From Octopus sinensis (Eukaryota): 26,409 nucleotides of DNA. Made by a program: the position numbers and the translations under genes. The notes under the pieces are model-generated. The model worked only from the letters and a program-made list of their open reading frames with translations. It was not told the origin of the DNA and ran no database searches. The stretch is taken from contig NW_021834079.1 of the NCBI RefSeq assembly GCF_006345805.1, positions 1 through 26,409 on the forward strand, given 5' to 3'. Every line of letters starts with the position of its first letter. The first letter of the stretch is position 1. Below are positions 1-26,409 of this stretch, in pieces.

Positions 1-1345
1 ACAGTTGCAACAAATTTGATAAACCACATTGGCAACTTAAGCCTTCGCAGACACTCAACGAGGTAGGCATGATCAACTGAGTCATATGCCTTCTTCACAT
101 CCACCCACATCGACACTAGTGAGTTTCCATGGGCTCTCGCGAGGCATTTGTTGATCAGTGCCTGCTCCTTAGCTCCCTGGCAATCCCGCCGAGTACCTAA
201 CTGGTTCTCGAAAAGAATTCCATTCACCTCCACGAAATCTCTGACCTCAGTAGCCACCACCTTAGTCATCAACTTGTACAGGTTGGGCATACAGGTTATC
301 GGACGATAATCTGTCGGAACGGAAGGGTTATCTACTTTAGGGATCAAATAAGTGACCCCAGTACATAACCACTCTGGAATCGAGCCAGGGTCTAGTGTAA
401 ACTGTTCGATTGCTCGACACATGCAATCATGGATAGGTTTGCAATTTTTTATAAAGAAATTATACACCTTATCGACCCCAGGTGTCTTCCAGTCAGAGAG
501 ACGGGTTACTGCTTCATCGAACTTCTTGCGGATATCAGAGACACCACAAGACTCGGTCATCAAGGGAGCATCGGGTCCAAAAAACGGAAACGACACACCC
601 TTGCGAGGACGTGCTTTTCACATACTCCCCCATGTGTCAAGCATTTCGGCCTTTTGCTGGGTACCCTCCTTCGTCTCTCCGTGTAACCGACGATAGAACA
701 CCCTGCGATTAAATTCAAACAGGTTGTTCTCCCGCCTGCGCTGACACCGAGACTCATGAGTTGAGAGCTTCTTCTGATAAACGAGAATCAGCTCCTCCCT
801 CTCTGCCCGGACACGCCTCAACTCGTTGAGGTCCCATTTGGCAGCTCGTCCCCGACGAAGTAAAGTACGCACCAAGGGGGGAGTCTTGCCCTTGACCCCA
901 TTGCTCACATTCAGAATGTGCCCAGTCAGCGCTTCCAGCTCGGCTTTCCTTGCGGCAATGTTTTCTCTCCATCTACTCTTTGGGGCAGGCATCTGGGTGA
1001 TTTCATCAAAAAGATTCTGCAGAGTAAACAAATCAATTTTATTAGTTGAGAAAAACAAAGAGTAATTTTATTAGTCGGCAAGCGTCAAACGAGACACTCT
1101 CCAGAGTCCTCTTAAGAACAGTTGACTGTACATAACTCTTTCGGGTCACTCTACGGTCCGCAAGGAGGACAACACGATTTGCAGAGAAATGCCTACTAAA
1201 TATCTTCCTAACTTGCAAGGGTAGCAATAACTCGCTACTCTGATGCTCGTGTTGTTCAGAACACGGGGGGCATCCTGTCGGCGTAACCGCAGCGAACCAG
1301 GAGGAAAGGTCTTGGTTAGCTTCTTCAGTCCATTCAAATTGAGAA
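1..1345 (-). mobile_element. R4/Dong-clade non-LTR retrotransposon, 5'-truncated, running off the window start
   Basis: The frame of the 618..1058 ORF continues past one TGA (618-620, at the expected W of GSMW) to base 1. It reads WKTPGVDKVYNFFIK, DYRPITCMPNLYK, CQGAKEQALIN and WVDVKKAYDSVDH (RT subdomains 0-3). The preceding YQKKLSTHESRCQRRRENNLFEFNRRVFYRRL block is typical of R4/Dong. A frameshifted upstream frame (EWTEEANQDLSSWF...) reaches ~1345. Confidence 0.85.
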
Positions 1346-2335: not shown

Positions 2336-3737
2336 TTAGCGCAGGGTAGACCGGTCAACCTGCATCATCGAAGGGTGGACAGGGCGAGGCTCATCAGTGA
2401 AGTAATCATGAGTAAGAGCATCCTGAGCGGAAATACGTTTTTCTGGAGAATAGCGAAAAAAAGAATTGAGCAAATTGAATCCATTCACAGTAAGGTAGTT
2501 CCCAAACCTGTTCCGCAATGAGTTATAGCGATAGTCCGGAATTTTAATCATCTTCACTCCTTCCAACTCGGTGAACCCCGGCCAAATCTTCTCGTTCGGA
2601 GAGCCAAGGTCCTTCAACTACTTGATCAATACAACCTTAAAGATTGCGTGAAGTTGATCAATCTCCGACCTGGAGGTCCAGAGGGGTCTCATGAGCAGCA
2701 ATTCAGCAAACACACAACCAACAGACCACACATCAACCTTTGTCGAATATTTCTTGAATAAAAAACACACACATACCTTGATCCCCAACAACAACTCGGG
2801 AGACCGATACCACAGAGTCACAATGACTGGCGTGTAGTTCTTAAGGGGAGAACCATATTCTCGGGCGGAACCAAAGTCACCCAACTTGAGGACCCCCCGG
2901 TCAGTGATGAGTATGTTTGAAGTCTTAATGTCCCGGTGGAGGATCCAGTTATCGTGCAGGTGGGCCACGGCGGTAAGCAGTTGCCTTAAAATGCACTTGA
3001 CTTCTCCAATCCTAAAGGGTGACTTGCGAGCCTCGATTAGCGACTTTAGGTCACTTTGGACGAAATCCATAACCACGTATATTCGATCCATATGTGACCC
3101 CACCACAATTTCCCGCACTCCCACAATGTTCTCGTGGGGGGCTTTCAACAAAGTAGATACCTCACGAAGAGAGGTTATCGGAAATCCATCCTTTTCATTC
3201 TCCATCTTGAGTCGCTTCAAAGCCACCAACTCGCCCGTGGTTTTGTCACGTGCCTGGAAGACCACTCCGTAACTCCCCTCCTCCACCCGAGACAGGTTTT
3301 CATACTCTTCCACAAACCGACACCCCTGAATTGCCGGGAAATACGACGCGAGTTTTTTTTCTGGGAATTTTTTTTGAGGGACAGCAATCTCTTCGGCAAC
3401 AATCTCTTCAGCAACAATCTCTTCGGGACTGTCCTCGCTGTTGTCGCCCTCTTCCTTTTTTTCTAATCAGATCTAACGATTTAAAAACTATACCAATTTC
3501 AGTCTCGCTCTCTGAGTTTTCAGACAAAGGAATGTCACGGAAAAATCCACGACGCTCAATCCTCATTTGCTTGGCACGGATTACCTTCCTTGCTAACAAT
3601 TCTGCAGAAAAGTCATTTTGTCCGCGTTTCTCTGATTCGGTTTTTAATGAGATTTTATAGTCTAGTTCGTTCTTATTGGATTCAGAGTCTGCCTCGGATA
3701 CTTCTCCATTTTCTAATAAAATCTTGAATTTCGACAT
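2336..3737 (-). CDS. CDK11: Cyclin-dependent kinase 11 (PITSLRE kinase), 4 exons, 440 aa as spliced
   Basis: Exons are 3737-3494, 3462-2777, 2752-2636 and 2611-2336 (1323 nt, open). Introns are 31, 24 and 24 nt. Motifs: YFPAIQGCRFVEEY, EEGSYGVV, GFPITSLRE, HRDIKTSN, DFG, VTLWYRSPELLLG, DLGSPNEKIWPG. Splicing restores LLGIK-KYSTKVD and IFK-DLG. Confidence 0.95.
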
Positions 3738-3831: not shown

Positions 3832-4360
3832 ATAATTTTGAGTCCACTTCTTTTCAACCTCGTCTTGTCGGACATTCCCCTGCCGTCTGTATGTACTGGC
3901 AAGCTTGTCATCTACACTGATGATATCCTGGTTATGGATACCTCGAAAAGGATATCACAGTCTTGGAGACGATTGAAGTCGTACATTGCCGAGTTAAAGA
4001 AGTGGACTGCTGAGAAGGGCTTGACCATAGCCATCGAGAAGAGCACCATTTCATGGACGCGAAGAGGAACACGTTGTGCAGCTACGTATTCCTATGCTAT
4101 GAGTGGTTATGATATGGATCTTTTCAAGAGTTTGAATCTAGACTATTTCGGAGTAATAGTCAACTTCTGTGGTTCGTGCGCCGACCACGTAGCTAAACAG
4201 AGGAAGAAGAGCGTTAGAATCCTCAGAAGCTTAACCAGTTCCATCTGGATCCGGAAACTTACATCTACGTCCACAAAACATGTCTACAGCCAGTCCTCAC
4301 ATATGGCTAGAGTGACTACCTTGTCGAACAGTTGGAAAAAACAAAACGTTTCGGATTGAA
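3832..4360 (+). mobile_element. Decayed non-LTR RT fragment (I/Jockey-group-like), domains 5-7 onward
   Basis: LSPLLFN...LVIYTDDILV (degenerate YADD)...WTAEKGLTIAIEKS...LDYFGV...RILRSLTSSIW. No upstream RT domains are present. Confidence 0.75.
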
Positions 4361-6749: not shown

Positions 6750-8818
6750 CTAGCTATTAAGTACTGGCTCGCAGAATTGAAAGACAATTCCCGCGTAAAA
6801 CAGCCAGCGAGATCCTCTGAATAAGGAATATAAATTTCCTGGGATCTCGGGAGCGATAGTTGCACAGACGGCCAAGTTTCTTAAGGTGAGCAAACGTCTT
6901 GGCCCCCAAAACATAGGAAGTCTCGACGGCAATTGTTCAAAACCTAAATCGGTCGCGCAAATCCTTGTATTTCGTTAATTTCGCGAATTCGGCCTTCTCG
7001 GCCGACGAACCGGGGCGACAAGCCGTGGAATTCAAGGCTTCCTTGGCGAAAGAGTCGGCACACATGACGTCCCAAACGGAGTGAATCCTTATCGAGAACA
7101 GTATCCAAAAGCGGAGAAAAAAGTACATTCAGCCAGGAGCCTGAGTATGGCTGACAGGCGGAACGGAAACAAGACAGTCTGTGTTGGTCGAGTTTTGTCC
7201 CAATCTCGCTGAGAAAAGATATCGGAAGGGACTTCAGAGAAATTTTGTTTCCAAAGTGCAAGGGTCGAATCGATATCAGAGTCCAACGATGATTCAGTAG
7301 TTTTTTCCAGAATCTTTTGGACAAGGAGATATGATCCAGACGCCGAAAAAAGAAAGGCAGGAAGAGCCAAATCAATACTGGAACGGAGGCCCAGACCCCC
7401 GTGACTCAAGGAAGTTTAGCCTGACACCAGGCAATATCGTCGAAATGCACATTAAGAATTTTCTCCGCAGAACTCGAACGAATTTATCATATGATTCCAG
7501 CACTTGCGTGACATAAAAACAAGGAGAGCTCCTCAGGATATAAATAATTTTTGGGATCAAAAGATAATTCTTGCGGATGTAGAATGAAGGATGAGGATCA
7601 ATGATAGAAAGTTTTTCACAAAGAGATGCGATAAGATTTTTTTGGCGAGGAGGATTCGTGTAGCTGAGTCGGCGAGAATCGGTGACCCCAGAATTTCCAG
7701 ATCAGACAGAAGTGTCTGTCTCAACTCAGGAAGGAGTCCACAGAAAAGAGAGAAGAAGTTCTTAAACAGGGATGGCTCAACAGAGAAATTGACAATCTCA
7801 GACTTGCTGGAATTAATGTCGGATAACGCCGAAATTAGAATGGCCAGGTCCTTCAACAAAACACCAGGTGGACCGCCCAGGGTGCAATCGTCGAGATACC
7901 AGAGATTAAGGAGTGATTCATTAACCCGGGCAATGGGATCCACGGCAAGAGCGAAAAGTAATGGTCCCAAAGGATCACCCTGTTGGACGCCACAGGACGA
8001 AGAAATGAAAAAACCGCCGGCGATTAAAAGTGATGGAAGCGAGTACGAAAGTGAGATAAAAGGAAGCAAGTGTGGAACACGGTCTTGACAGACCTCCAAC
8101 AAATAGCCACGGTCCAGAGAATTGAAAGCATTAGTTACATCCAGTTTCAATAAGGCAAGGGGAATATTGGAACGAATAGAAGCGTGAATAAAACAACGAC
8201 AGGCATAGACAAAAGACTCGCAGCCGCCAGGAACACCCACACCCAAATGAATGGGCTGCAGTTGCTCGCCAATAGAAGGGATAACGGACTTGCAACAGAT
8301 TTTCGCAAATAAACGACGAAAGACATTTCCAACAGGAATAGGCCTGATACCACCATCTTTCTTGCCCAAAGCTGTAAGATTCGCGGAAAAGAACAGAATT
8401 CTAGCATGGTCAGAAATTTTGCCGCTTAGAAATAAATTGCACAAGTTAGTGCAAGCATTCAAGAGGTGATTCCCGGTATCACCAGTTGCGGAAATTAAGT
8501 CTCTCAAATGAATAGGGCGGAGACCGTCGATACCTTTGCTACTGTTACCCCTAAAAAAGTTTAAGACGTCCAGAAGTTGTTTGGAAGAAACAGAAAAGGG
8601 AAAACAGGAGGAATGGGCCATATCAAAGGTTACTGGTTTTCTAATAGGGTGCTTTTCCTTGAGAATGCGAGCAACATCGGGGGTGATTGTACGGACAGAA
8701 TCGGAAGATGACAAGAGACGAACAGCCGCGCTGACATCATGCGACATTAGACAGGAGTTAATCAGAGACCGTAAACGTTTAGAAGCGTCCTTCGACGAGA
8801 GCATAGCGGTAGATTTTA
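6750..8818 (-). mobile_element. CRE-clade non-LTR retrotransposon (copy A), 5'-truncated, frameshifted, internally deleted
   Basis: RT ORF 7557..8804 has FFSANLTALGKKDGGIRPI, LDVTNAFNSLDR, GVQQGDPLGPLLF and WYLDD. Later frames give GGLGLRS and QHRLSCFRSACQPYSGSWL, then WDVMCADSF..KAEFAKLTKY..VETS..QRISLAVLRGN. The zinc knuckle and RPDG are missing at ~7090. Confidence 0.92.
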
Positions 8819-11721: not shown

Positions 11722-12232
11722 ATATTATTATAGCACATTCCGTAGGGACATAAATAGAAAGAGTTATATTCCTACACGTGCCACACACGATACGGCCTTC
11801 TGTACCAACAATTTCCAACTTCTGCGGTTTTGGGCCAGTATCCGAAGTTCGTCGAGATCATCACAGGTCTTCAGGGTTTTCTTTAAAAGCCTCAAGTCGT
11901 CTTGCAGAACAACCGGTAGGGTTGTTCTGGGTCGTCCTCGAAATTTTACGTCATCTGATAGGAAGTATTCTTGCATGGTCACATAGGAAGGTGAATTTGG
12001 ATCCATCCTCAAGATGTGTCCAAATAGTTTCCAGTGACCATTGACAATATCCCGACTAATTGGCCTCGAGTTGCTGATCTTGTAAATAGTTGAGTTGCTG
12101 ATTTTCTTCGGCCAGTGTAGGCAGTTCAGGGAACGAAGCTGTTTTCTGTGGAAAGAATCAAGGTTCTTTAAATCTGAATCAGAAATGCCCCATGGTGAGG
12201 AATTGTAGAGTAGTACAGGTTTGACGAAAGAT
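11722..12232 (-). mobile_element. RTE-clade LINE 3' segment (~500 bp)
   Basis: FVKPVLLYNSSPW..LDSFHRKQLR..WPKKISN..WKLFGHILRM..GRPRTTL..AQNRRSW, then a GTGCTATAATAAT tail. Confidence 0.9.
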
Positions 12233-13166
12233 AAGAGCATTCTGTTGATAAAAGAACAGATCGACGAAAGAAACCGTGATCTCGAGTTTCCAGTGTCCGG
12301 CGAGATTAGGTCCTTAAGATGTCCTGGTCGCAGCCCGTCTAGACCCGTCCCGCTGCTTGGAGCGAAGGATAAAATTCCGGCTTTAATGTCATCGTCCGAG
12401 ATAAACAATGGCTGAAGAATCCCTGGGAGAGGTGGAATTCGAGAGTCGCTTTGAGCAGCCGGATGTCGATCCAGGAGAGCTTCATGAGTCTCAATTGAAG
12501 GCTTCAGGAATGGACTATCACTGGAGAGCACTCTCAAAGCCGAGTGTATTCCTCCTTCCAATAATTTAGAATGAATAGTCCTCCGTAAATGTATCTCTTC
12601 AGAAAGTGTATCCTTTGGTATCTTTCGATGACTCTTCACAGTAGCCGGTTGTAATGGGGGATCGATCACTGTAAGTTCGGAATCAAACAGGCGTATGTTT
12701 TCTTTGTCGGACGATGAAAAAGATCTACCACGATTCGTAGAACCAGAAGGTAAACCCAAACACAACGGGCAAAACAAAGCAGGCGGATCCAGTAACTGAT
12801 GTCGTTCGATGATAACGAGCTTTCAATGCTGGCTGAAAGGCAGTCGGCAGCGGTTAAACGAGCTCCTCTGGGAATCCCTATGAGGATGTGTCTTGAGGAT
12901 GACCATTTAGAAATCGTGTCAAGTAGGCGTTCGTGATCCAACGGCACAGTGCAAGCAGTTTGATTGAAGGGGGCAGTGCCAGCTGGAAAGCATCGATGAC
13001 AGTCCCAATGGGAAATGTTAGTAAGGGCTTTCTTAGAAACTCCTACGGATGACATGTGAAAGAGCCTTGAGCACGCTGAACAAGTGATCGTTCTCTTTCT
13101 CGTGTTAATTATGTTGCATTTTTCGCACGAATGGCTGTTTTTCTTATTTACCTCATTAATCTTCAT
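12233..13166 (-). mobile_element. CRE-clade element 5' part (copy B) with N-terminal PHD finger, fused in frame to the RTE segment
   Basis: The 13166 ORF reads CEKC..CSAC..FHMSS..WDCHRC, continuing in frame into IPRGARLTAA..SSND..WIRLLCF. After a frameshift it reads SKLLEGGIHSALR..DRHP..GLDGLRPGHLKDLIS..INRML. Confidence 0.88.
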
Positions 13167-13479
13167 TGCACTGACTCTGTGTTGAAAATAGTGATTACAC
13201 TACACCACGTCAAAAAAATTCATATTAATTATTTTACATGTCCCGAACGTGTCTTAATCTGATACAGTGAATACTCGCAAATTCGCTATTTTTGGTCATT
13301 TTTTGCTGATAATTTGAGAATTCACAAATTTCAGAATATAATCAATAATTTTTGAATGTGGTAAAACTGTTTAATAATTTAAAAATAGACAAAATTGACG
13401 TAATTAAAAAAATTAATTTAATTCTTCTTTTCCTAATTTGAGGGAGACCTTCCAATTTGGAATTATTGACATTATAAAC

Positions 13480-14190
13480 TTTGATATCCATTCAGGAAGC
13501 CCGGAATTTTTCAGAATCTCTGAAGGAACGTCATTTAGCGAGGCGTGGCGGGACCTCGACCGGCGCTCCTGCGACACGAGAGAGGGTGGAGCCCTTTAGC
13601 GTCGACTTTGGCTCCACATCGGCATCGGTGGATGCTGCATATGTTGAGGCCAAGCCGAAGGGAGATCCCAATCCTCAGGCAGTCGTCATCCAAAAAAGTT
13701 CCTGTTGATGTAGATGGGTAGGCGCCGAGCCATGCATCGCTGTGAGGATGTGCGGCCGAGAGTAGGCACGCTAGCCGGTGTTGGTCTAGCTCTGGTTTCA
13801 TCTTCCAAAACGAGTCGGCGGCCCAGATTTCATCCCATTCCCGTTGCACGGACATGTCGAACGGAAGAAGTAGGTTAGCGTCAGTCCAGAATTCCAGGAG
13901 TCGGCGGTCGGCAACTCCAGAGAGAGTTCGTTGAAGGGGAGTAGAACCACTAGGACGAGTTGCCGGCTTCTGGAAATTGAAGAGAAATGTGCATGTGGAG
14001 CCAGATCTTTCGGCGAGCGAAGACCGATCCCTCCGAACCTGACGGGAAGTTTTGCTTGAGTCCAACCGATTTCGTCAAAGGAAATGTTCAAAACTGCTCC
14101 GTGCAGGATTTCAATGATTTTTCCAAGTAAGACAGAATGTCTGGATGCGAGTAGCATGGCAGGCAGTGGAGCGTGTACAGAATTTTCGAC
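13480..14190 (-). mobile_element. Internal CRE fragment (post-RT region and zinc knuckle)
   Basis: QAKLPVRFGGIGLRS, QHRLACLLSAAHPHSDAWL, CRCGAKVDAKGLHPLSCRRSAGR. Both ends are truncated. Confidence 0.88.
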
Positions 14191-14299
14191 ATATGTAATT
14201 GAGATTATGAAATAAATTGAGTAATAATTTGCTTAAAAAAAATTTGCACGTTGCACGTTGTTGTTGTGGTGCACTTTTTCAGTATATTTGTCAACCTAT

Positions 14300-14472
14300 C
14301 TTATCTTTTTCTTTCATTTTATCTCTCCATTTATCATTTCTTTTTCTTTCATTTTATTTGTCCTTCTATCTCTTCCATTTCTTTATTTCATTTTTCTTTC
14401 TTCTGAACTTCTTTCTTCTTTCTTTTCTATTTCTTTTTTATACATTTCCATCTTTCTTTTCTATTTCTTTCC
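14300..14472 (+). repeat. Polypyrimidine low-complexity tract (TTTC/TTC-like)
   Basis: About 170 nt made almost entirely of T and C, ending just before ATG 14477. Confidence 0.85.
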
Positions 14473-14476
14473 TACG

Positions 14477-17188
14477 ATGGCTATTTGCTCTTCATGCAAA
14501 ACTAGCAACGATCGGAAGAAAGGTAGATACTGTTCTGGCTGCAACAGTTTCTTCCACCTTTCGTGTGTTCGACTTTCCAGGCGCGTTTCAGCTTCTCTCA
14601 TAACCTGGAACTGCCCTGTTTGTCGTTCTTGTTCCCCGTTCGGCCAACAGTCCGCCGGAAATCCCTGCTGAAAGTCCATCTCCGTCAGCCGAAGATGCTT
14701 TAAGATTCATCTATTCTTCTCGCTGTAACCGCCAAATTCCGGCACGGATACCGAAGGCAGCGAGGATTCAAGCTGCTCTCTCTTTGTCCACAGCTATAAA
14801 CCGAGCTTTGTCATCTAATGACCAGTCTGACTGGTTACTCCTTTTTGGTTTTGCTGTTTTCGGTATTGGGATCCAACCCTCCCGGCCCGACAGCGAGTCT
14901 AAAAAACTTTCTCCCGCATCGATTATTAAACAGCAACTCGCCCTATTCGATCATTGTACTTCTCTGTTTCCCTCCCAGTTCGATTCCCTCCACTCTGACT
15001 CTCACAAATGTGTCGCCCCTTCTGTGGTTAACACTAAAACTTCCTCCGATTGCATTTACCTCCGTCGTAAGGTGAACAGCAAGCTGTTGGACGGCGACGT
15101 CCGCGGAGCTGTCAGACTTGTTGCCTCCTCTAACCGGCTTTTGTCCCCATCTCCTTCCGCATTGTCTAATTTGAGATCCAAGCACCCCAGTCCTCCAGTA
15201 AACTCCCGCACCCAACCCGCTGTCGATACGACCGCCCTTCCGCAACTGCTGGTTACCGCTTCACAGGTTGAGAAGGCACTGAAAAGTTTTTCCCCAAGCA
15301 GCAGTGGGGGTATAGATGGGCTGAAGCCCGGACACATTAAAGACTTGACTTCACCTCTTACTGCTGAGGCAGGCCGTCTCCTCTTGGAATCTATCACCAA
15401 TCTCTGTAACCGTCTTATCGGTGGGAATTTACCGGATTTTGCCCGGGCGATTTTCTTCTCGGCTAATCTCACTGCTTTGGGTAAAAAAGATAACGGGGTC
15501 AGGCCGATCGCCGTGGGTAATGTTTTCCGCAGATTGGCCGGAAAGCTCGTTTGCCACGTTGTGATCCCCGAGTTGGTCCCGAAATTTTTGCCAGTCCAAT
15601 TGGGCGTCGGCGTCAGTGGAGGGTGTGAATCGGCTGCCCATGCCGTAAGAGAACTTATGGATTCTTCATTGGAATATCTTTTAGTTAAACTGGACATATC
15701 AAATGCGTTTAACACAGTGAGACGGGATCATTTGCTCGAGACCTGCCTTTCTCTCGCCCCCTCCGCTTATCCTCTGGTCCACCTTTCGTACTCACAACCC
15801 AGCCTCCTCCTGTTTGGCGATTCCTTTATCGTCTCATCGACCGGAGTGCAACAGGGAGATCCCCTGGGGCCTTTCCTATTTGCTATGTGTGTCAACTCCG
15901 TCGCTCATTCTGTCCGCTCTCCGGTAAATATCTGGTACTTGGACGACGCGACGATTTGTGGACCTCCCCGCTCTGTCTTAGACGACCTGCGGAGCATTAT
16001 CCCGGCCCTTTCATCCATCGGTCTGGAGATAAACTCAAGCAAGTCCGAAGTCCTAAACCTGAATATTCCTTCCGATTTTTTGCCGAAACTCTGGACGCCC
16101 TGGAACCTATTCTAAAAGGCGCGCGGGTATCAGAAACAAAGGACCTTGTAATCCTTGGTTCGCCAATTGGTCACGAGGCCCTCTCACAAACGCTCATCGC
16201 CAAGGCAAGCAATCTGTCAAACATGATCGAACGGCTTTCCCTCATTGATGCCCACGTCGGGTTCTTTCTTCTGCGTAACTATTTCTCAACTCCGAGGCTT
16301 TTGTACACCCTAAGGAGTTCTCCTTGTTTTCGCATGCCTAATCTGTTATCCGATATCGATTCTATCTTGAAGTCTGGAGCCGAGTATCTGTGCAACATCC
16401 ATTTCGACGCTCTGGGGTGGCTTCAATCTTCCCTGCCTGTTAATCTCGGGGGGATTGGCCTTCGTTCGCCCGTTTATCTGGCTCTTCCTGCCTTCCTCTC
16501 GTCCCTGGCATCATCCCGTGCCCTCACTGACATCGTTCTCAGAAACCTTCCCGAACGAAAAATGTCAGTTGATCACGTGGCCGCTCTGGACCTTTGGGAT
16601 TCATTGTACAACAAAAGACCCAGTGACCCGTGTATCCAAGCTCAATGGGATGCCATTTCTTGTGAAGCTCTTGACGTACATCTACGCAAAAATTTCGATC
16701 AGCACAGACTTGCATGTCTCCGCGCAGGCTGCTGCACAGGGAGTGGGGCCTGGCTGGATGCTCTCCCTGTCCCTTCCACCGGTAACCTACTAGACAAAGA
16801 TTGCCTACGAATTGGTTTATCATTGCGTCTTGGATTGGAAATCTGCGAAATACACAAATGTCGTTGTGGTGCTGTCATTGACCGTTTTGGTCTACATCCC
16901 CTTTCCTGTCGTCGCAGTGCAGGGCGCGCACCACGCCATGCAGCACTTAACGACGTTATTCAGAGGGGGCTCACGGCCGCTGGGATTCCATCAATCCTCG
17001 AACCCGTCGGGCTTGCGAGGGGAGACGGAAAAAGACCCGACGGCCTATCGGACTTTCCCGTTTGAGTTCGGCAAGTCTCTGTTATGGGATGCGACGTGTT
17101 CAGACACTTTCTCGGAGCTCAACCTTCCTTCTTCAGCTGTCGAGCCTGGCTCAGTCTCTCGCAAAACCGAGAAGATGAAGATTGGAAA
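14477..17188 (+). mobile_element. Near full-length CRE-clade retrotransposon (copy C): PHD - RT - zinc knuckle - RLE, 3' end cut by satellite
   Basis: From ATG 14477: CSSC..CSGC..FHLSC..WNCPVC (C4HC3). Frameshifts occur near 14660, 16085 and 17045. Motifs: GVQQGDPLGPFLF, WYLDD, CRCGAVIDRFGLHPLSC, RGDGKRPDG, LLWDATCSDT. The last ~60 codons and the tail are absent. Confidence 0.93.
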
Positions 17189-20100
17189 GATTTTGTAATA
17201 AATTATGTGACATATTATGCAATTTGGGAAGGTAGCAGGATGTGAGGATTTAGGGGTACTTGAGATTATGTAATTAATTGCGCAATATATACAACAATTT
17301 AGAGAGGTCTCTAGATGTGTGAATAAGTGGGTACTAGAGATTATGTAATAAATTGCCTAATATATTACGTAATTTTTAGAGGTCCCTATATGTAAAGATA
17401 TATGGGTTCTTGAGATTATGTACTAAATTGCGTTATATACTTTCCAATTTGGAGATGTTTCTAAATTTTAGGTTATGGGGGTACTTAATATATATCATAA
17501 ATTGAGTAACATTTATATTATCAATTTGGGGAGGTGCAGGATGTAAGGATATGGGGTTCTTGAAATTATGTAATAAATTGCGTAAAATATGAATTTCCAA
17601 AGTTTTCCAGGATGTAAGGATCTATGGGTTCTTGAGATTATTTAAAGATTTCGTTATGTATTTTCATTTGGAGAGGTCTCTAAATGTTTGGATATGGGGG
17701 TACTTGAGATTTTGAAATAAATTATGTAACATATTATGCAATTTGGGAAGGTGCCAGGATGTGATGATTTAGGGGTACTTGAGATTATGTAATTAATTGC
17801 GTAATATATACTACAATCAAGAGAGGTCTCTAGATGTGTGAACAAGTGGGTAATTGAGATTATGTAATAAATTGCCTAATATATTACGTAATTTTTGGAG
17901 GTCCCTATATTTAAAGATATATGGGTTCTTGAGATTATGTACTAAATTGTGTTATATACTTTCCAATTTGGAGAGGTTTCTAAATTTTAGGATATGGAGG
18001 TACTTGAGATTAAATCATAAATTGAGTAAAATTTATATTATGCAATTTGGGGAGGTGTCAGGATGTGAGGATTTAGGGGTACTTGAGATTATGTAATTAA
18101 TTGCGTAATAAATTGCGTAAAATATGAAATTTGGAGAGGTCCCACGATGTGAGGATATATGGGTTCTTGAGATTATTTAATTTATTGCGTTATATATTTT
18201 CAATTGGAGAGGTCCCTAAATGTTGGGATATGGGGGTACTTGAGATTTTGTAATAAATTATGTAACATATTATGCAATTTGGGAAGGTGCCAGGATGTGA
18301 GGATTTAGGGGTACTTGAGATTATGTAATTAATTGCGTAATATATACTACAATTAAGAGAGTTCTCTAGATGTGTGAATAATGTGGGTACTTGAGATTAT
18401 GTAATAAATTGCCTAATATTACGTAATTTTTGGAGGTCCCTATATGTAAAGATATATGGGTTCTTGAGATTATTACTAAATTGCGTTATATACTTTCCAA
18501 TTTGGAGATGTTTCTAAATTTTAGGATATGGGGGTACTTGAGATTATATCATAAATTGAGTAACATTTATATTATGCAATTGGGGAGGTGTCAGGATGTG
18601 AGGATTTAGGGGTACTTGAGATTATGTATTAATTGCGTAAAATTGCGTAAAATATAATTTTGGAGATTTCCAGGATGTGAGGATATATTGGTTCTTGAGA
18701 TTATTTAATAATTGCGTTTATTATTTTCAATTGGAGAGGTCCCTAAATGTTGGGATATGGGGTACTTGAAATTTTGTAATAAATTATGTAACATATTATG
18801 CAATTTGGGAGAGGTGTCCAGGATGTGAGGATTTAGGGGTACTTGAGATTATGTAATAATTGCGTAATATCAACTACAATTTAAGAGGTCTCTAGATGTG
18901 TGAATAAGTGGGTACTTGAGATTATGTACTAAATTTGTTATATACTTCCAATTTAGAGAGGTTCTTAATTTTAGGATATGGGGGTACTGAGATTATATCA
19001 TAAATTGAGTAACATTTATATTATGCAATTTGGTGAGGTTGCAGGATGTAAGGATATGGGGTTCTTGAAATTATGTAATAATTGCGTAAAATTTAATTTT
19101 GGAGAATTTCCAGATGTGAGGATATATTGGTTCTTGAGATTATTTAATAGATTGCGTTATATATTTTCATTTGGAGAGGTCTCAAATGTTGGGATATGGG
19201 GTTACTTAAGATTTTGTAATAAATTATGTAATATTATGCAATTTGGGAGGTGCCAGGATGTGAGGATTTAGGGGTACTTGAGATTATGTAATTAATTGCG
19301 TAATATATACTACAATTAAGAGAGGTCTCTAGATGTGTGAATAAGTGGGTACTTGAGATTATGTAATAAATTGCCTAATATATTACGTAATTTTTGGAGG
19401 TCCCTATATGTAAAGATATATGGGTTCTTGAGATTATGTACTAAATTGCGTTATATACTTTCCAATTTATAGAGGTTTCTTAATTTTAGGATGGGGGGGT
19501 ACATGAGATTATATCATAAATTGAGTAACATTTATATTATGCAATATGGTGAGGTTGCAGGATGTAAGGATATGGGGGTTCTTGAAATTATGTAATAAAT
19601 TGTGTAAAATTTGAATTTTGGAGAATTTCCAGGATGTGAGGATATATTGGTTTTGAGATTATTTAATAGATTGCGTTATATATTTTCAATTGGAGAGGTC
19701 CCTAAATGTTGGGATATGGAGGTACTTGAAATTTGTAATAAATTATGTAACATATTATGCAATTGGGAGAGGTGTCAGGATGTGAGGATTTAGGGGTACT
19801 TGAGATTATGTAATTAATTGCGTAATATCAACTACAATTTAAGAGGTCTCTAGATGTGTGAATAAGTGGGTACTTGAGATTATGTACTAAATTGTGTTAT
19901 ATACTTTCCAATTTAGAGAGGTTTCTTAATTTTAGGATATGGGGGTATTGAGATTATATCATAAATTGAATAACATTTATATTATGCAATATGGTGAGGT
20001 TGCAGGATGTAAGGATATGGGGGTTCTTGAAATTATGTAATAAATTGCGTAAAATTTGAATTTTGGAGAATTTCCAGGATGTGAGGATATATTGGTTCTT

Positions 20101-21186
20101 GAGATTATTTAATAGATTGCGTTATATATTTTCATTTGGAGAGATCTCTAAATGTTGGGATATGGGGTTACTTAAGATTTTGTAATAAATTATGTAACAT
20201 ATTATGCAATTTGGGGAGGTGCCAGGATGTGAGGATTTAGGGGTACTTGAGATTATGTAATTAATTGCGTAATATATACTACAATTAAGAGAGGTCTCTA
20301 TGTGTGAATATGTGGGTACTTTAGATTATGTAATAAATGCCTAATATATTACGTAATTTTTGAGGTCCCTATATGTAAAGATATATGGGTTCTTGAGATT
20401 ATGTACTAAATTGCGTTATATACTTTCCAATTTGGAGATGTTTCTAAATTTTATGATATGGGGGTACTTGAGATTATATCATAAATTGAGTGAGTAACAT
20501 TTATATTATGCAATTAGGGGAGGTGTCAGGATGTGAGGATTTAGGTTTTCTTTAGCCTATGTAATAATTTGCGTAATAAATTGCTTAAAATATGAAATTT
20601 CCAGAGGTCCCAGGATGTGAGGATATATGGGTTCTTGAGATTATTTAAACAATTTCGTTATGTATTTTCATTTGGAGAGGTCTCTAAATGTTTGGATATG
20701 GGGGTACTTGAGATTTTGAAATAAATTATGTAACATATTATGCAATTTGGGAAGGTGCCAGGATGTGATGATTTAGGGGTACTTGAGATTATGTAATTAA
20801 TTGCGTAATATATACTACAATTAAGAGAGGTCTTTAGATGTGTGAAAAAGTGCGTAATTGAGATTATGTAATAAATTGCCTAATATATTACGTAATTTTT
20901 GGAGGTCCCTATATGTAAAGATATATGGGTTCTTGAGATTATGTACTAAATTGCGTTATATACTTTCCAATTTGGAGATGTTTCTAAATTTTAGGTTATG
21001 GGGGGTACTTAATATTGTATCATAAATTGAGTAACATATATATTATCCATTTGGGGAGGTGTCAGGATGTGAGGATTTAGGGGTACTTGAGATTATGTAA
21101 TTAATTGCGTAACAAATTGCGTAAAATATGAATTTTGGAGAGTTTCCAGGATGTGAGGATATATTGGTTCTTGAGATTATTTAATA
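17189..21186. repeat. Higher-order satellite of ~75-bp monomers (7 types, A-G)
   Basis: Monomer starts at 17189, 17264, 17339 and 17414 are 75 bp apart. Type-A monomers start at 17189, 17708, 18244, ~18770, 19210, ~19730, 20176 and 20712, giving units of 519, 536, 526, 440, 520, 446 and 536 bp. Confidence 0.95.
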
Positions 21187-21648: not shown

Positions 21649-21683
<35 letters not shown>

Positions 21684-22977
21684 TTAGGGTCAAACTACTA
21701 AGTAAAGTCAACAAACTAATAAATTCTCCCAGCGAGACGGAGGGAACAGCTGTTGCCACGCATGACAGCCAGCAGGATCCTCTGAATGGGAAAGTAAATT
21801 CCTAGGGTCCTTGACGCGAAAGAACAAAGATGTCCCAATTTCTTTAGGGAAGTGAGGGTCCCGGAGCAAAGACGCCGGAAGTCTCGACAACGATTGGCCA
21901 AAACCAAAAGTCATCCATCAAAGACTGATATTTCCGGCACTTCGAAAGCTCAGCCTTATTAGCACGAGACCCAGCAAGAGAGGCCGATTCGTTGATGAAA
22001 GACTTTGAGAAGGTATCCACACAAGTGGAATCCCAGACCAAAGGTCTCCCAGAATAAAACGAGAACAACGTAGAGCCGTCCGGCCTTTTCCCGTCACCAC
22101 GGTCGAGACCCTTAGGCTCAAGGACAGAAGGGTAGCCGGCCTTTTCGAGTGAGTCGAGAATGATTCTGTTAATCGCCGAATGGCGTGGAATACGACCGCG
22201 CTTTTCTTGCAGGAGAGGGCATGGAGCCCGTATACGTCCATAGTAGATCCGCACCGGCAGGGGTGGGGACTACAGATCGGAAGTCCGAGGCGGAGGCAAA
22301 TGCCAAAACGGAGGGCGTCGGAGTCAAGACAGGTGTCCAAATGGGTCGAAGGAAGGCAGTTAAGCCAAGAGCCAGAATGCGGTTGGCGGCTGGCACGGTA
22401 ACAAGCCAGTCTGTGCTGGTTCAGGAGAGCCTCCAACGAGTCCGCATGATGCTTACTAAGAATTTTATCCCATTCACGTTGGAGGGACCTATCAGAAGGG
22501 AACTCAAGCCCTTTTTCCTTCCAAAGCAAAGTGCAGAATTAATATCAGAGTCCAAACGAGATCCGGGCGATTTTCAAGAATCTTATGGACAAGAAGATAC
22601 ATCCTGAAGACGATGAAAGGAAAGCGGGAAGAGAAATGTCGAGAGCCGAGCGGAGCCCAAGCCCACCAAAAGGAACAGGAAGTTTGGCCTGACGCCAACC
22701 GACATCATCGAACTTGACGTTAAAAATAATCTCGGCTGAAGAACGCACCAGAGCGTCAAAAGACTCAAAGCAGAGGGAACAGAAAAGCAACAGGAACTCC
22801 TTAGGACATAATTGATCCTCGGAATCAAAAGAAAGTTTTTGAGGATAAAAAAAGCGGGATGGGATCGATGTCCACAAGTTTATCACAAAGAGAAGCAAGA
22901 GCATTTCTCTTGGAATCGAGAATACGAGAGACCGATTGGTGGTGGATCGGGGCACCCAGGATTTCAAGTTCAGAATA

Positions 22978-24916
22978 TGTCACGAGCCTAGTCGTTACGA
23001 GCTAGGTCGTGACATTTCGCTTATGTTTCTATAAAGATTAAAAATTAATTATCGCTGAGCCTAATAAAATTATTCTTAATATTTAAAATTAATCTTATTA
23101 ATTAAAACAAAATATCCGGATAATTATACATCCGTAATTGTAATATACATATAAACGCGTGTTTTTTCTGTGTTACCTATGTCGCGTTCTTTTGTAAAAG
23201 ATATGGATGAGTATCGATTGCTTGAAAAAGTTTTAACTGGACAAAATATTGAAAATCAATCGAGGCAAAAAGTTTACTCCCTTAAAAAGAAAGCTGAAAA
23301 GTTCATTTTAATCAATGGAAGAATATACCTTAAACAGCCGTGTGGAAATCACAAATTAGTGATTTCGACGGACAACGTTGACGAGATGAAATTGGTGGCT
23401 AGCCAAATTCATCTCGTTTCGCATTGTGGACATAACACTCTTGAGAACATGTGCCATGAAAGATATTTCACTGTAAAACGACAAATAATCCGAAAAATTG
23501 TTGCCGATTGTGAAATTTGCAAATTTTCAACTCCCTTGAAAGTAGGGGGGAAGAGAAAATCATGTGATTGCAATCGTCCCAATGAAAAATTCCAGATGGA
23601 CTTAATTGATCTGAAGAGGTATCAATTTTTGTATTATATAATAAAGATTTAAACAAACAAATGAAACTATAGCAGGCTTAACGGCTTTTAACGGTTATTG
23701 ACGTCTACTCGAAGTTCGCATTCACTCGAAACTAAAACATAAAGCGGAATTGACGTTGCTGAAAATCTCAAAAAAATTTTTCTACGTTTGGACGTGTCCA
23801 TATTTGCAATCGGATAATGAAACTGAATTCAAAAATCCACATGTGACTGCATGTGTGAATCTTTCAACATTCAACAGATACACAGTAGGCCAAACAATCC
23901 CAGAAGTCAAGGATCATCGAGCGTTTTAACCAAACGGTTACCAGGTCGCTATCTAAAATGATGGCTAATGATGAAGATAAGTGTGGACGAAGTATATAGA
24001 TTGAAGCTGTTTATTTTAATTAAAGTAAACATTCTTCTACTGGTTTTCTTAAAAATTATTCATTTTAGGAGATTCCCCATTTCATAGATATCGTGGGATT
24101 AGAGGATCGAACAACTTCATTCCTGAAAAGACATGAGATGAAGAGTGACAATTCAGATGGTTAGTTAAAATTCGCAATATATAGAATAGATTCGAAAAAC
24201 ATAGAATTTTCTTTCAACTTTCCGCACACCGATGTGACATCTCCATATTCCAAAAAAATGAACCAGGAGAAGGGGTGTTCATCGGTCAAAATATTCATTT
24301 AATTGGAGATAAGGTAAAACTCAAATTATTCTAAATTGTAGATAAGGATCAAAAAGGATTATGGTACCAATCCTTCACTGCACTCAAAAAATTGAAAGTC
24401 CATACGGAGAAGTTTGTACAATAACTGAAATCCTGCGCATAATATGGTCAGAGTTCAAATGGATGAGGGAACTACTAAGAAGACACTCATGAAAAGAATT
24501 AAAAAAATTTAAATAACATAATTGATTGTTTTGTTAATAAAAAAATTCAAAACCTAATTAGCAGAGAAACATTCATGACCGAACATTCAAATAGACAAAA
24601 TTTCGAATAAAAATACATTTTCTGCGTATTTTTCTAATTTAAAGCATTTTGAATTTTCTTATTTGAAAAAAATAGCAATTCATAAATTAAAATATTATTT
24701 TAGTTCGGGAATCGTTTTTAAAGCACGGTCTAGTTGGCAATTTTTTAAATTCTATCATCGAAAAATATTGGCATCCAATTCCATTTTTAGTATTTGTCAT
24801 TTTATAATATTTATTTGACAAAGTCGATTTGAAATTGAATTCAAATATTTTTTGAATTTTTTTTCTAAGTCCATAAGGTAACGACCTAGGCTCGGTAACG
24901 ACCTAGGCTCGTGACA
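22978..24916 (+). mobile_element. Ginger2/TDD-type DNA transposon, 1939 bp
   Basis: ~37-39 bp TIRs TGTCACGAGCCTAG(G)TCGTTAC.. lie at 22978-23014 and 24878-24916. The 5-bp TSD GAATA lies at 22973-22977 and 24917-24921. It encodes a retroviral-type integrase and has no RT, RNase H or LTRs. Confidence 0.92.
23179..24512 (+). pseudogene. Ginger2 DDE integrase/transposase with four micro-introns and several frameshifts
   Basis: HHCC finger (HLVSHCG..CEIC), D1 in QMDLID, LTVIDVYSKF, D2 in QSDN, and E in IERFN 35 residues later after repairing two 1-nt shifts. Also HSSTG|DSPF and GDK|IRIKKDY. Introns: 23619-23646 (28), 24043-24068 (26), 24160-24189 (30), 24314-24341 (28). Confidence 0.85.
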
Positions 24917-25761
24917 GAATAAGAGGTCTGCCTCAGATCGGGCAAGAGGCCACGAAACTGGGCAAAAAGGTCTTCGAAGGTGAGGTCTTCGACGTTAAGA
25001 TTAACGATTTCAGATTTTAGAGAATTGATTTCAAGAACAATAGATGACAACGCCGGGGAGTAGAGATTGCAAGTCGTTTAGCAAAATGTCGGGCGGACCA
25101 CCAATAGTACAGTCGTCCAAATACCAAATATTAAGAGGGGGACGCAATCCTGCGGGCGACAAAGTCCACGAGAGGGCAAATAATAAAGGACCAAGGATCG
25201 CCTTGCTGTACGCCACAGGAAGACGAAAGAAAGAATCGCAGCAACCAAGAGGCTCGGGTTTACCATAAGAAAGAAAAAATGAAGGGGCAGCAGCAGAGAA
25301 GGAAATTCTGGCACCTTGCAAACCTCAAGAAGATGCTTTCTATTGAGCGAATTGAAAGCGTTCTTCACATCCAATTTAATAATAACTGGGGCCGCTCTGA
25401 GAGACGAGCCGATTCAATGAAAACACGGGCAGGTGGACCGAGGCCTCGCACCCACCAGGTACCCCCACACCCAACTGAATGGGCTGGAGTCGTCGCTAAT
25501 AGGAGGAATTACAAGCTTGCATCCGACCTTTGCAAACAAGCGACGAAAAACGTTTCCCGACGGCAATAGGTCTGATGCCGCCGTCTTCTCCCCAAAGCAG
25601 ACAGGTTCGCAGAGAAGAAAAAATTGAAAACTTAAGTTATTTCAATTTTAATTTAAAATCATGTTAAAATTTAAAATAATTAATAAATATATTTGTTGAT
25701 GATAGGCTTGTTAGGTGTCAAAGTTGCGTCTAGCGCTCGGTCGCGCGCTGCGCTCGCGACA

Positions 25762-26409
25762 TAATAGATTGAGTTATATATTTTCCAATGGAGAGGTCCT
25801 GAAATGTTGGGATATGGAGCTACGTCTTGAAATTTTTGTAAAAATTATCTGTAACATATTATGCAATTTGGGAGATAGAGGGTGTCGGATGTGGGGGATT
25901 TAAGGGTACTTGAGATTATGTAATAAATTGCGTAAATCAACTACAATTTAAGAGGTCTCAGATGTGTGAATAAGGGGGTAGTTGAGATGTGTAATAAATG
26001 CCATAATATATTACGTAATTTTTGGAGGTCCTATATGTAAAGATATATGGGTTCTTGAGATTATGTACTAAATTGTGTTATATACTTCTCCAATTTAGAG
26101 AGGTTTCTTAATTTTAGGACATGGGGGGTTGGTAATTGAGATTATATCATAATTGAGTAAATTTATATTATGCAATATGGTGAGTTTGCAGAATGTAAGG
26201 ATATGGGGGTGGGTACTAATTAAAATTATGTAATAAATTGCGTAAAATTTGAATTTGGAGAATTTCCAGGATGGAGGATATATTGGTTCTGAGATTATTT
26301 AATAGATTGCGTTATATTTTCAATTGGAGAGGGTCCCTAAATGTTGGAGATATGGAGGTTACTTGAAATTTTTGTAATTAAATTATGTCCATATATGCAA
26401 TTTGTGAGA
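25762..26409. repeat. Continuation of the ~75-bp higher-order satellite to the window end
   Basis: Resumes in register within monomer G, then A-B-C-D-E-F-G-A, with more small indels than the left block. Confidence 0.9.

Follow-up and report, generated by a model that had tools for sequence, protein, structure and literature searches.

Near the middle of a 26,409-nucleotide stretch of the Octopus sinensis genome (assembly GCF_006345805.1, contig NW_021834079.1, positions 1 to 26,409; here called the window), two decayed retrotransposon copies lie head to head, and each begins with a zinc finger. The locus raises the question of what kind of finger this is, whether it belongs to the element, and what it might do there. 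The two copies, A on the minus strand and B on the plus strand, are 5' ends from two different families of the CRE clade of non-LTR retrotransposons (those that lack long terminal repeats). The explanation that best accounts for the data as a whole, to which we assign a probability of about 0.72, is that they are CRE-II elements in which a PHD finger is an integral part of an R2-like integration machine and probably helps to dock it on its target.

The identity of the finger was examined at the level of its ligands. The pattern C-x2-C..C-x2-C-x(3-5)-H-x2-[C/S]..W-x-C-x2-C was searched in the six-frame translation of the window and was found exactly twice, at 14486 (plus strand) and 13127 (minus strand), and in 0 of 200 shuffles of the window. 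The copy B finger (14486 to 14623, plus strand, behind an ATG at 14477) reads CSSC..CSGC-NSFF-H-LS-C..W-N-C-PVC and has the full Cys4-His-Cys3 set in the spacing C-x2-C-x11-C-x2-C-x4-H-x2-C-x15-C-x2-C with W-x-C. The copy A finger (12990 to 13127, minus strand) reads CEKC..CSAC-SRLF-H-MS-S..W-D-C-HRC, with the spacing C-x2-C-x11-C-x2-C-x4-H-x2-S-x15-C-x2-C; its sixth zinc ligand is mutated from Cys to Ser, giving H-M-S-S. The original prediction therefore had both fingers in the right place and was correct that the residue two before the His is not Trp (Phe in the plus copy, Leu in the minus copy), but a complete ligand set is found in the plus copy only. Among homologs, the zinc ligands are invariant or nearly so.

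For both fingers, the best Pfam family was PHD (PF00628). Copy B scored 28.5 bits (E value 1.5e-6), above the cut-off of 24 bits, and copy A scored 21 bits (E value 3.5e-4), just under it, as expected of a decayed copy with a lost ligand; the homologs P0034 (40.8 bits) and P0074 (25.7 bits) were also above the cut-off. An AlphaFold model of the copy B finger, made from 20 aligned sequences, reached a mean predicted local distance difference test (pLDDT) score of 89.3. When this model was submitted to Foldseek, the 50 best solved-structure matches were all PHD fingers, with TM scores of about 0.8 to 0.86 and root mean square deviations of 1.2 to 2 Å, and included Alfin-like 1 and 3, BPTF, PHF2, PHF8, Pygopus, and TAF3. 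A sequence search of the PDB likewise returned PHD fingers only, including those of MLL3, ORTHRUS2, WSTF, UHRF1, and KDM5. A RING reading was rejected, with RING_2 at 17.6 bits against a cut-off of 27.3 bits and structural matches that were all PHD. Pfam, the structural comparison, and the PDB search thus agree with the assignment to PHD rather than RING that had been made from the sequence.

The finger belongs to the single open reading frame (ORF) of the element. In copy A, the 5' part of a CRE-II element (12235 to 13166, minus strand, ATG at 13166), the finger shares one ORF (12666 to 13166) with the conserved motifs IPRGAR (12846 to 12875) and SSNDISYW (12789 to 12812). In copy B, the corresponding RIPKAAR..SSNDQSDW region lies one frame off the finger, with no other stop between them. 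A single +1 shift parts the finger from the body of the ORF, and it can be placed within 14627 to 14668 as one base because both frames are open across 14604 to 14668. The original prediction had drawn the single-ORF organization from copy B; the organization itself stands, and the copy in which it is seen in one frame is the minus-strand copy A.

Relatives extend this result to undamaged proteins. In an alignment of homologs, the finger is followed within single proteins by RIPKxAR..W..LL.F, then DGDI.AALR.L.S.D, and then the reverse transcriptase (RT). A related cephalopod-like contig (L001) holds a near-intact element that runs from the PHD finger to the restriction-like endonuclease (RLE) with one frameshift and one stop, and ends with an AATAAA signal and an A25 tail. 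The finger, the YxDD motif of the RT, the CCHC knuckle, and the RPD motif of the RLE occur together in the intact proteins P0158, P0165, P0193, P0147, P0152, and P0245. Intact predicted proteins from PHD to RLE span 972 to 1436 residues, and one of them is KAI5728591.1 of Diaphorina citri; the 972-residue protein is represented by 14 near-identical versions on contigs of about the size of the element. Intact proteins of 970 to 1010 residues from other animals, D. citri included, thus also show the finger as part of the single ORF. As a side observation, L003 and the clusters of P0158, P0147, and P0152 contain many intact full-length ORFs on contigs of 3.3 to 5.5 kb from metagenome and read-archive assemblies, which suggests transcribed or very young copies in animals.

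For the clade assignment, a 903-residue frameshift-corrected translation of copy B (the copy B composite) was compared with 22 RLE elements taken from an alignment in the supplement to Mahbub et al. 2017 (PMC5678591; 884 columns). By both BLASTP and phmmer, all six CRE references ranked first of the 22. Cre-1_BM was the closest (37% identity over 565 residues, E value 1.5e-117), followed by Cre-1_HM, CRE2, CZAR, SLACS, and CRE1, and only then by any R2, NeSL/Utopia, HERO, or R4/Dong element. A neighbour-joining tree was calculated on 510 columns with 200 bootstraps from the references and 11 query and homolog sequences. The window copy and ten database homologs joined Cre-1_BM at 100% bootstrap, and the whole CRE clade was recovered at 100% as well. 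The search rankings and the RT phylogeny therefore bear out the earlier placement of these elements among the RLE-type non-LTR retrotransposons of the CRE clade. More precisely, the window elements are members of the metazoan "CRE-II" subgroup typified by Repbase Cre-1_BM, here in the genome of a cephalopod. An O. sinensis protein matches part of the main reading frame at 98% identity. A paralogous O. sinensis locus (L002) has 93% DNA identity to the window but is 5' truncated and lacks the finger, and it was rejected as the locus of the window itself. Among molluscs, LINEs (long interspersed nuclear elements) of the CRE type have been reported to be nearly restricted to cephalopods (Martelossi et al. 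2023, PMC10294476).

The full-length AlphaFold model of the copy B composite (pLDDT 90.7, predicted TM score 0.86) had as its top Foldseek matches 9nl3 (R2Tg), 8gh6 (R2Bm), 9dou, and 9nl2, ahead of LINE-1 ORF2p. The R2 proteins that were matched (R2Tg, R2Bm, and R2Pm) had been captured during target-primed reverse transcription, and the matches had E values down to 8e-17 over 830 to 990 aligned columns. By its modelled fold, then, the protein is shown as an R2-like enzyme for target-primed reverse transcription. Each element encodes one long protein consisting of the PHD finger, a short linker that is disordered in the model (pLDDT below 50 at residues 55 to 63), a conserved helical region marked by RIPKxAR..W..F, the RT, a second linker, the CCHC knuckle, and the RLE. 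The copies end in poly(A).

To see how widely the finger is distributed, an exhaustive search of 1.84 billion representative proteins was made with a profile of the finger and the pre-RT region, which gave 3872 clusters at an E value of 0.001 or less and 1221 at 1e-10 or less. A hidden Markov model specific to the family's finger detected it in 91 of the 145 best new representatives, a proportion that is biased upward because the search profile itself included the finger. The N-terminal modules were classed by regular expressions, which are crude and undercount C2H2 fingers with a spacing of 14 residues. Two PHD fingers were found in P0034 and P0127, and a PHD finger followed by a C2H2 finger in beetle and psyllid elements (P0193, P0378, and P0403). 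Full-length moth elements from Plutella, Cydia, Tuta, Mythimna, and Galleria (P0325, P0333, P0340, P0353, and P0380) had C2H2 only, and still other relatives carried a C2HC finger or a Cys-rich cluster. P0094 had a SAP domain, and P0245 and P0250 had an RFX DNA-binding domain. In an RT tree of the group, calculated without bootstrap, the PHD-bearing members were scattered, with the other types interspersed, a distribution that fits an old PHD finger with repeated replacement. In the preferred reading, the lineage has inherited the PHD finger as an integral module.

The exchange of modules in CRE-II seems to be much broader than PHD. Pfam hits among the relatives P0245, P0250, P0394, P0400, P0094, P0311, and P0359 comprised RFX DNA-binding (PF02257), SAP, OTU (PF02338), and UCH protease (PF00443) domains; the SAP domain of P0094 was rescanned and positioned, and the others are precomputed hits only. 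In addition, the annotation of the plant Castilleja foliolosa includes a 943-residue CRE-II protein (P0327) that shares 45% identity with the psyllid element, and this may reflect either insect contamination of the assembly or horizontal transfer.

The original prediction had considered a CRE element with a PHD finger to be possibly new. No description of PHD in CRE or other RLE elements turned up in a literature search, which agrees with this, but the combination is not a rarity of this locus, given the number of finger-bearing relatives. Moreover, a protein of the beetle Ignelater luminosus is already named "PHD-type domain-containing protein" in UniRef, so the architecture is visible in public databases. 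The PHD-first layout is widespread and, within its known clade, apparently an undescribed variant.

What the finger might do was approached from its surface. Across 16 fingers, the net charge was +5 to +9 and the isoelectric point 9.0 to 10.2, with 6 to 11 basic and 0 to 2 acidic residues in each. Beyond the zinc ligands, conservation was limited to the Trp that precedes the last Cys pair and to an R-K pair within the first loop. In BPTF and ING2, a Trp two residues before the His forms the methyl-lysine cage. This aromatic cage of H3K4me3 readers is missing here, as judged by the cage positions of BPTF and ING2; the residue two before the His varies among the homologs (Arg, His, Gln, Met, or Phe), and a Trp usually stands one before it. 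The known readers of H3K4me0/H3R2, AIRE, BHC80, and UHRF1, use acidic residues to contact unmodified K4 or R2, on a finger that is acidic or neutral. The C-S-G-C-N stretch of the finger aligns with the acidic C-D-E-C-D stretch of UHRF1-type fingers. As far as sequence can speak to mechanism, membership in the H3K4me0-reader class appears somewhat disfavoured.

Since the finger is strongly basic and has no methyl-lysine cage, its likeliest partners would be DNA, nucleosomes, or another acidic surface, and not the basic H3 tail; RNA, too, would suit a basic finger better than that tail. It stands at the N-terminal position where RLE elements carry their target-engaging modules, and where the sister lineages have C2H2, C2HC, SAP, or RFX domains. 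From position and charge together, it may be proposed that the finger helps to dock the ribonucleoprotein on the target without reading the DNA sequence. We hold this general docking role tentatively, at slightly less than even odds. Lineages with PHD only, such as the octopus copies, would then insert without a specific target sequence, and may have given up sequence-specific recognition, while the presence of PHD and C2H2 together in insects suggests that the two modules do different jobs.

The insertion sites are consistent with this proposal. The window contained no Rfam family, no tRNA, and no TTAGGG telomeric repeats. Three A-tailed copies were available for comparison, namely, the one that ends in the window (flank from 21650 downward) and those on L001 and L003, and their 3' flanks were mutually unrelated. 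Site-specific insertion into spliced-leader RNA genes or telomeric repeats, which is typical of the founding CRE members but not of all Repbase CRE families, was not observed in this small sample.

Two other functions were weighed against docking. In the original prediction, the finger may be a reader of unmethylated H3 (H3K4me0) that steers integration to a chromatin state rather than to a sequence, which would also explain the clustering of the copies. The true PHD fold, the H3 tail binding of all of the best structural neighbours, and the absence of the cage Trp two before the His in both window copies agree with such a reader, but the charge of the fingers does not: at +5 to +9, they differ from aligned PHD stretches that are about neutral (0 for both ORTHRUS2 and WSTF), and Ser, Gly, Asn, or basic residues replace the acidic contact residues at the positions of UHRF1, AIRE, and BHC80. 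Nor is any surface conserved beyond the ligands, the Trp, and the R-K pair. A general targeting role has been proposed for PHD in CR1 and L2 elements (Metcalfe and Casane, PMC4120745); in beetle and psyllid relatives of the present elements, however, a C2H2 finger is kept beside the PHD finger. The copies do lie within or beside a satellite array, and about 31% of the window is derived from CRE elements, yet the clustering that the original prediction had cited as a fit to chromatin-guided insertion is accounted for by the surroundings. A 75-bp satellite array makes up the region and is broken up by transposons of several kinds, including a LINE tail, an integrase fragment, and RT fragments; in such a general transposon graveyard, clustering needs no special targeting. 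An H3K4me0 reader is accordingly judged unlikely.

Alternatively, the finger may take no part in targeting and instead bind the RNA of the element itself, a protein of the host, or a second copy of its own protein, and so serve in assembly, import into the nucleus, or stability; a function of this kind is suspected for certain zinc knuckles of LINE ORF1 proteins. Its small size and basic charge, the disordered linker that joins it to the body, and the occurrence of PHD in the RNA-binding ORF1 of CR1 and L2 elements (PMC4120745) would suit such a role, and in some relatives the C2H2 finger beside it could do the DNA work. However, the modules that replace PHD in sister lineages (C2H2, SAP, and RFX) are DNA-binding families, and in the solved R2 complexes the N-terminal modules contact target DNA. 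A non-targeting role is therefore also considered improbable. Still more radically, the finger could be foreign to the element, as an exon captured from the host or an ORF that arose by chance, or it could be a RING or another treble-clef finger taken for PHD, and the window by itself gives this some colour, with a copy A finger that is under the Pfam cut-off and has lost one ligand and a copy B finger that is out of frame with the body. This explanation is refuted by the relatives, by Pfam, by structure, and by the shuffles: dozens of independent relatives, intact proteins among them, have this finger in front of the same conserved region, PHD is the top Pfam family in both copies with RING_2 far under its cut-off, the 50 best structural matches and all listed PDB sequence matches are PHD fingers, and the pattern did not arise in any of the 200 shuffles. 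We regard it as having almost no chance of being correct.

Docking by an integral PHD finger remains the preferred reading, and several points weigh against it. The docking role is inferred from position and charge. The closest structural matches of the finger (Alfin-like, BPTF, PHF2/8, and TAF3) are H3K4me readers, so histone binding is compatible with the fold. The lack of target specificity is drawn from three 3' junctions that belong to different families and species, and no target-site duplication was definable, the best shared word at the tailed minus-strand copy being 8 bases. The inflated proportion of finger-bearing relatives is a further point, as is the clade tree, which is a neighbour-joining tree on 22 references rather than a maximum-likelihood tree with the full Repbase sample.

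Comparison with known systems places the finding more exactly. Cre-1_BM (Repbase, from Bombyx mori; LINE/CRE-II in RepeatMasker) is the closest reference, with a match that covers the RT, the linker, and the CCHC knuckle and with the same C-x-C..H-x3-C knuckle followed by ..SCxxSAG. The lineage differs at the N terminus, where its full-length moth relatives open with one C2H2 finger and lack PHD, as seen in the moth proteins rather than in the Repbase entry. The trypanosomatid elements CRE1, CRE2, SLACS, and CZAR belong to the same clade and share the single ORF with the RT followed by CCHC and RLE, but identity to them is 24 to 30%, and the window has a PHD module and no RNA gene. The insertion sites of these founding CRE elements are spliced-leader RNA genes, and their N termini have motifs of the C2H2 type. 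The R2 elements (R2Bm, R2Tg, and R2Pm) are the best fold match and have the same order of N-terminal modules, RT, linker, zinc knuckle, and RLE; they form a separate clade in the tree, and no ribosomal DNA (rDNA) was found in the window. R2 finds one site in the 28S rDNA with zinc-finger and Myb modules. Among retroelements in which a chromatin-reader fold biases integration, the best known are the chromoviruses, LTR retrotransposons with a chromodomain. They provide the analogy behind the H3-reader model and differ from the present elements in class, in enzyme (an integrase), and in reader fold. Recruitment of a PHD finger by a LINE is itself not new. PHD domains occur in ORF1, or at the start of the single ORF, of CR1 and L2 LINEs, where Metcalfe and Casane (2014, PMC4120745) suggested a general role in targeting. 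As in the window elements, PHD was there recruited by a LINE, shuffled among lineages, and sometimes placed N-terminally in a single ORF, whereas CR1 and L2 belong to the Jockey superfamily and use an apurinic/apyrimidinic endonuclease (APE) instead of the RLE of the CRE clade.

The finding is thus incremental, as PHD fingers in LINEs were already known from CR1 and L2 and the role of the finger is here only inferred. Its interest lies in the variety of modules. RLE-type LINEs such as R2 are under development for gene insertion at chosen sites, and it is the modules at the N terminus that determine where they act. Metazoan CRE-II elements have repeatedly exchanged this module (PHD, PHD plus C2H2, C2H2, C2HC, SAP, and RFX), and they offer a natural set of variants for studying how target choice is encoded and whether a module that is not sequence specific, or that reads chromatin, can replace one that reads DNA. 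Should the finger be a true reader of chromatin or nucleosomes that guides the integration of an RLE-type LINE toward a state of chromatin such as satellite heterochromatin, CRE-II would be the LINE counterpart of the chromodomain-guided LTR elements, and the swaps among PHD, C2H2, SAP, and RFX would be a natural re-targeting series on one R2-like enzyme; this possibility is, in our estimation, doubtful. For annotation, the result explains PHD-type domains in "hypothetical proteins" of cephalopods and insects that are retrotransposon ORFs.

By mapping the copy B composite onto the window, six CRE-related pieces were placed, which together amount to about 8.1 kb when summed from their coordinates. 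Protein identity of the pieces to copy B was about 30 to 54%, so they represent different families and not recent duplicates. Copy B begins with a presumed 5' untranslated region (UTR) of short T/C-rich repeats (14227 to 14476, plus strand), and its body (14640 to 17180, plus strand) comprises the N-terminal helical region, the RT, the linker, the CCHC knuckle, and the RLE. Its motifs are RIPKAAR at 14745 to 14777, YLDD at 15927 to 15953, the knuckle CRCG..HPLSC at 16859 to 16909, and the RLE motifs KRPDG at 17027 to 17044 and WDATC at 17079 to 17108, all on the plus strand. Two further frameshifts lie near 16080 and 17055. The copy is cut at about 17180 by satellite, so that it lacks roughly its last 60 codons together with the 3' UTR and the tail.

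Copy A, mapped at 12235 to 13127, covers residues 4 to 316 of the copy B composite at 33 to 36% identity and has one frameshift near 12770. Its CRE homology stops at 12235. The broken end is fused in frame (ORF 11764 to 12777) to a segment at 11764 to 12234 (minus strand) that has no match to the mapped composite and contains the motifs ..LLYNSSPWG..GHILRM..RGRPR..LAQNRRSW.. Judging from these typical C-terminal motifs, the segment is probably the tail of a different non-LTR element, another LINE, that truncates copy A at residue 316.

Of the remaining CRE pieces, all on the minus strand, one (6968 to 8774) is a 5'-truncated CRE-II copy without the finger that covers residues 197 to 903 at 40% identity to copy B. 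Another, between copies A and B (13485 to 14142), covers residues 621 to 843 and has its CCHC motif at 13574 to 13624. The CRE-II copy at 21651 to 22985 is 5' truncated from about residue 555 and matches the composite at 21949 to 22864 (residues 594 to 900), with CCHC at 22209 to 22259 and KRPDG at 22075 to 22092. It retains the catalytic Lys region of the RLE, which is lost in copy B, as well as a 3' UTR of about 160 nucleotides and an A32 tail (21651 to 21682). The sixth piece (24910 to 25627), located between this tailed copy and a second satellite block, is a more distant RT fragment with stops and 29 to 35% identity to copy B. On L001, a second CRE fragment (176 to 661, minus strand, residues 671 to 846) lies 4.5 kb upstream of the near-intact element, which makes this contig another case of CRE pieces close together.

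Copy B sits inside a 75-bp satellite. An array of about 52 copies (17188 to 21186) abuts its 3' break, a remnant of 38 bp (14189 to 14226, plus strand) lies directly 5' of its 5' UTR, and a second block with the same 75-bp unit occupies 25851 to 26409. The array starts within the ORF, about 60 codons before its end, and copy B must have lost its 3' end after insertion. The satellite was rejected as part of the 3' UTR of the element: it starts inside the ORF, neither L001 nor L002 has it, and it is found again both on the 5' side and at the end of the window. The satellite pieces on the two sides of copy B were also rejected as a target-site duplication; their monomer registers overlap but they are only about 73% alike. 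The satellite itself shows 68% matches and a higher-order period of 446 bp at 19347 to 20338; the array has a strong skew of G over C and is interrupted by transposons.

Other features of the window lie outside the CRE pieces. A separate RT fragment at 3838 to 4359 (plus strand; RVT_1, 33 bits) comes from another LINE, and a weak integrase zinc-binding domain at 23170 to 23652 (plus strand; PF17921, 18 bits, below the cut-off) suggests a fragment of an LTR element. An uninterrupted ORF of 231 residues at 2618 to 3313 (minus strand) covers the greater part of a protein kinase domain (Pfam Pkinase, E value 6.7e-53) that is CDK10/11-like with a PITSLRE-like motif. No intron interrupts it across 690 bases, indicating either a large exon or a processed copy.

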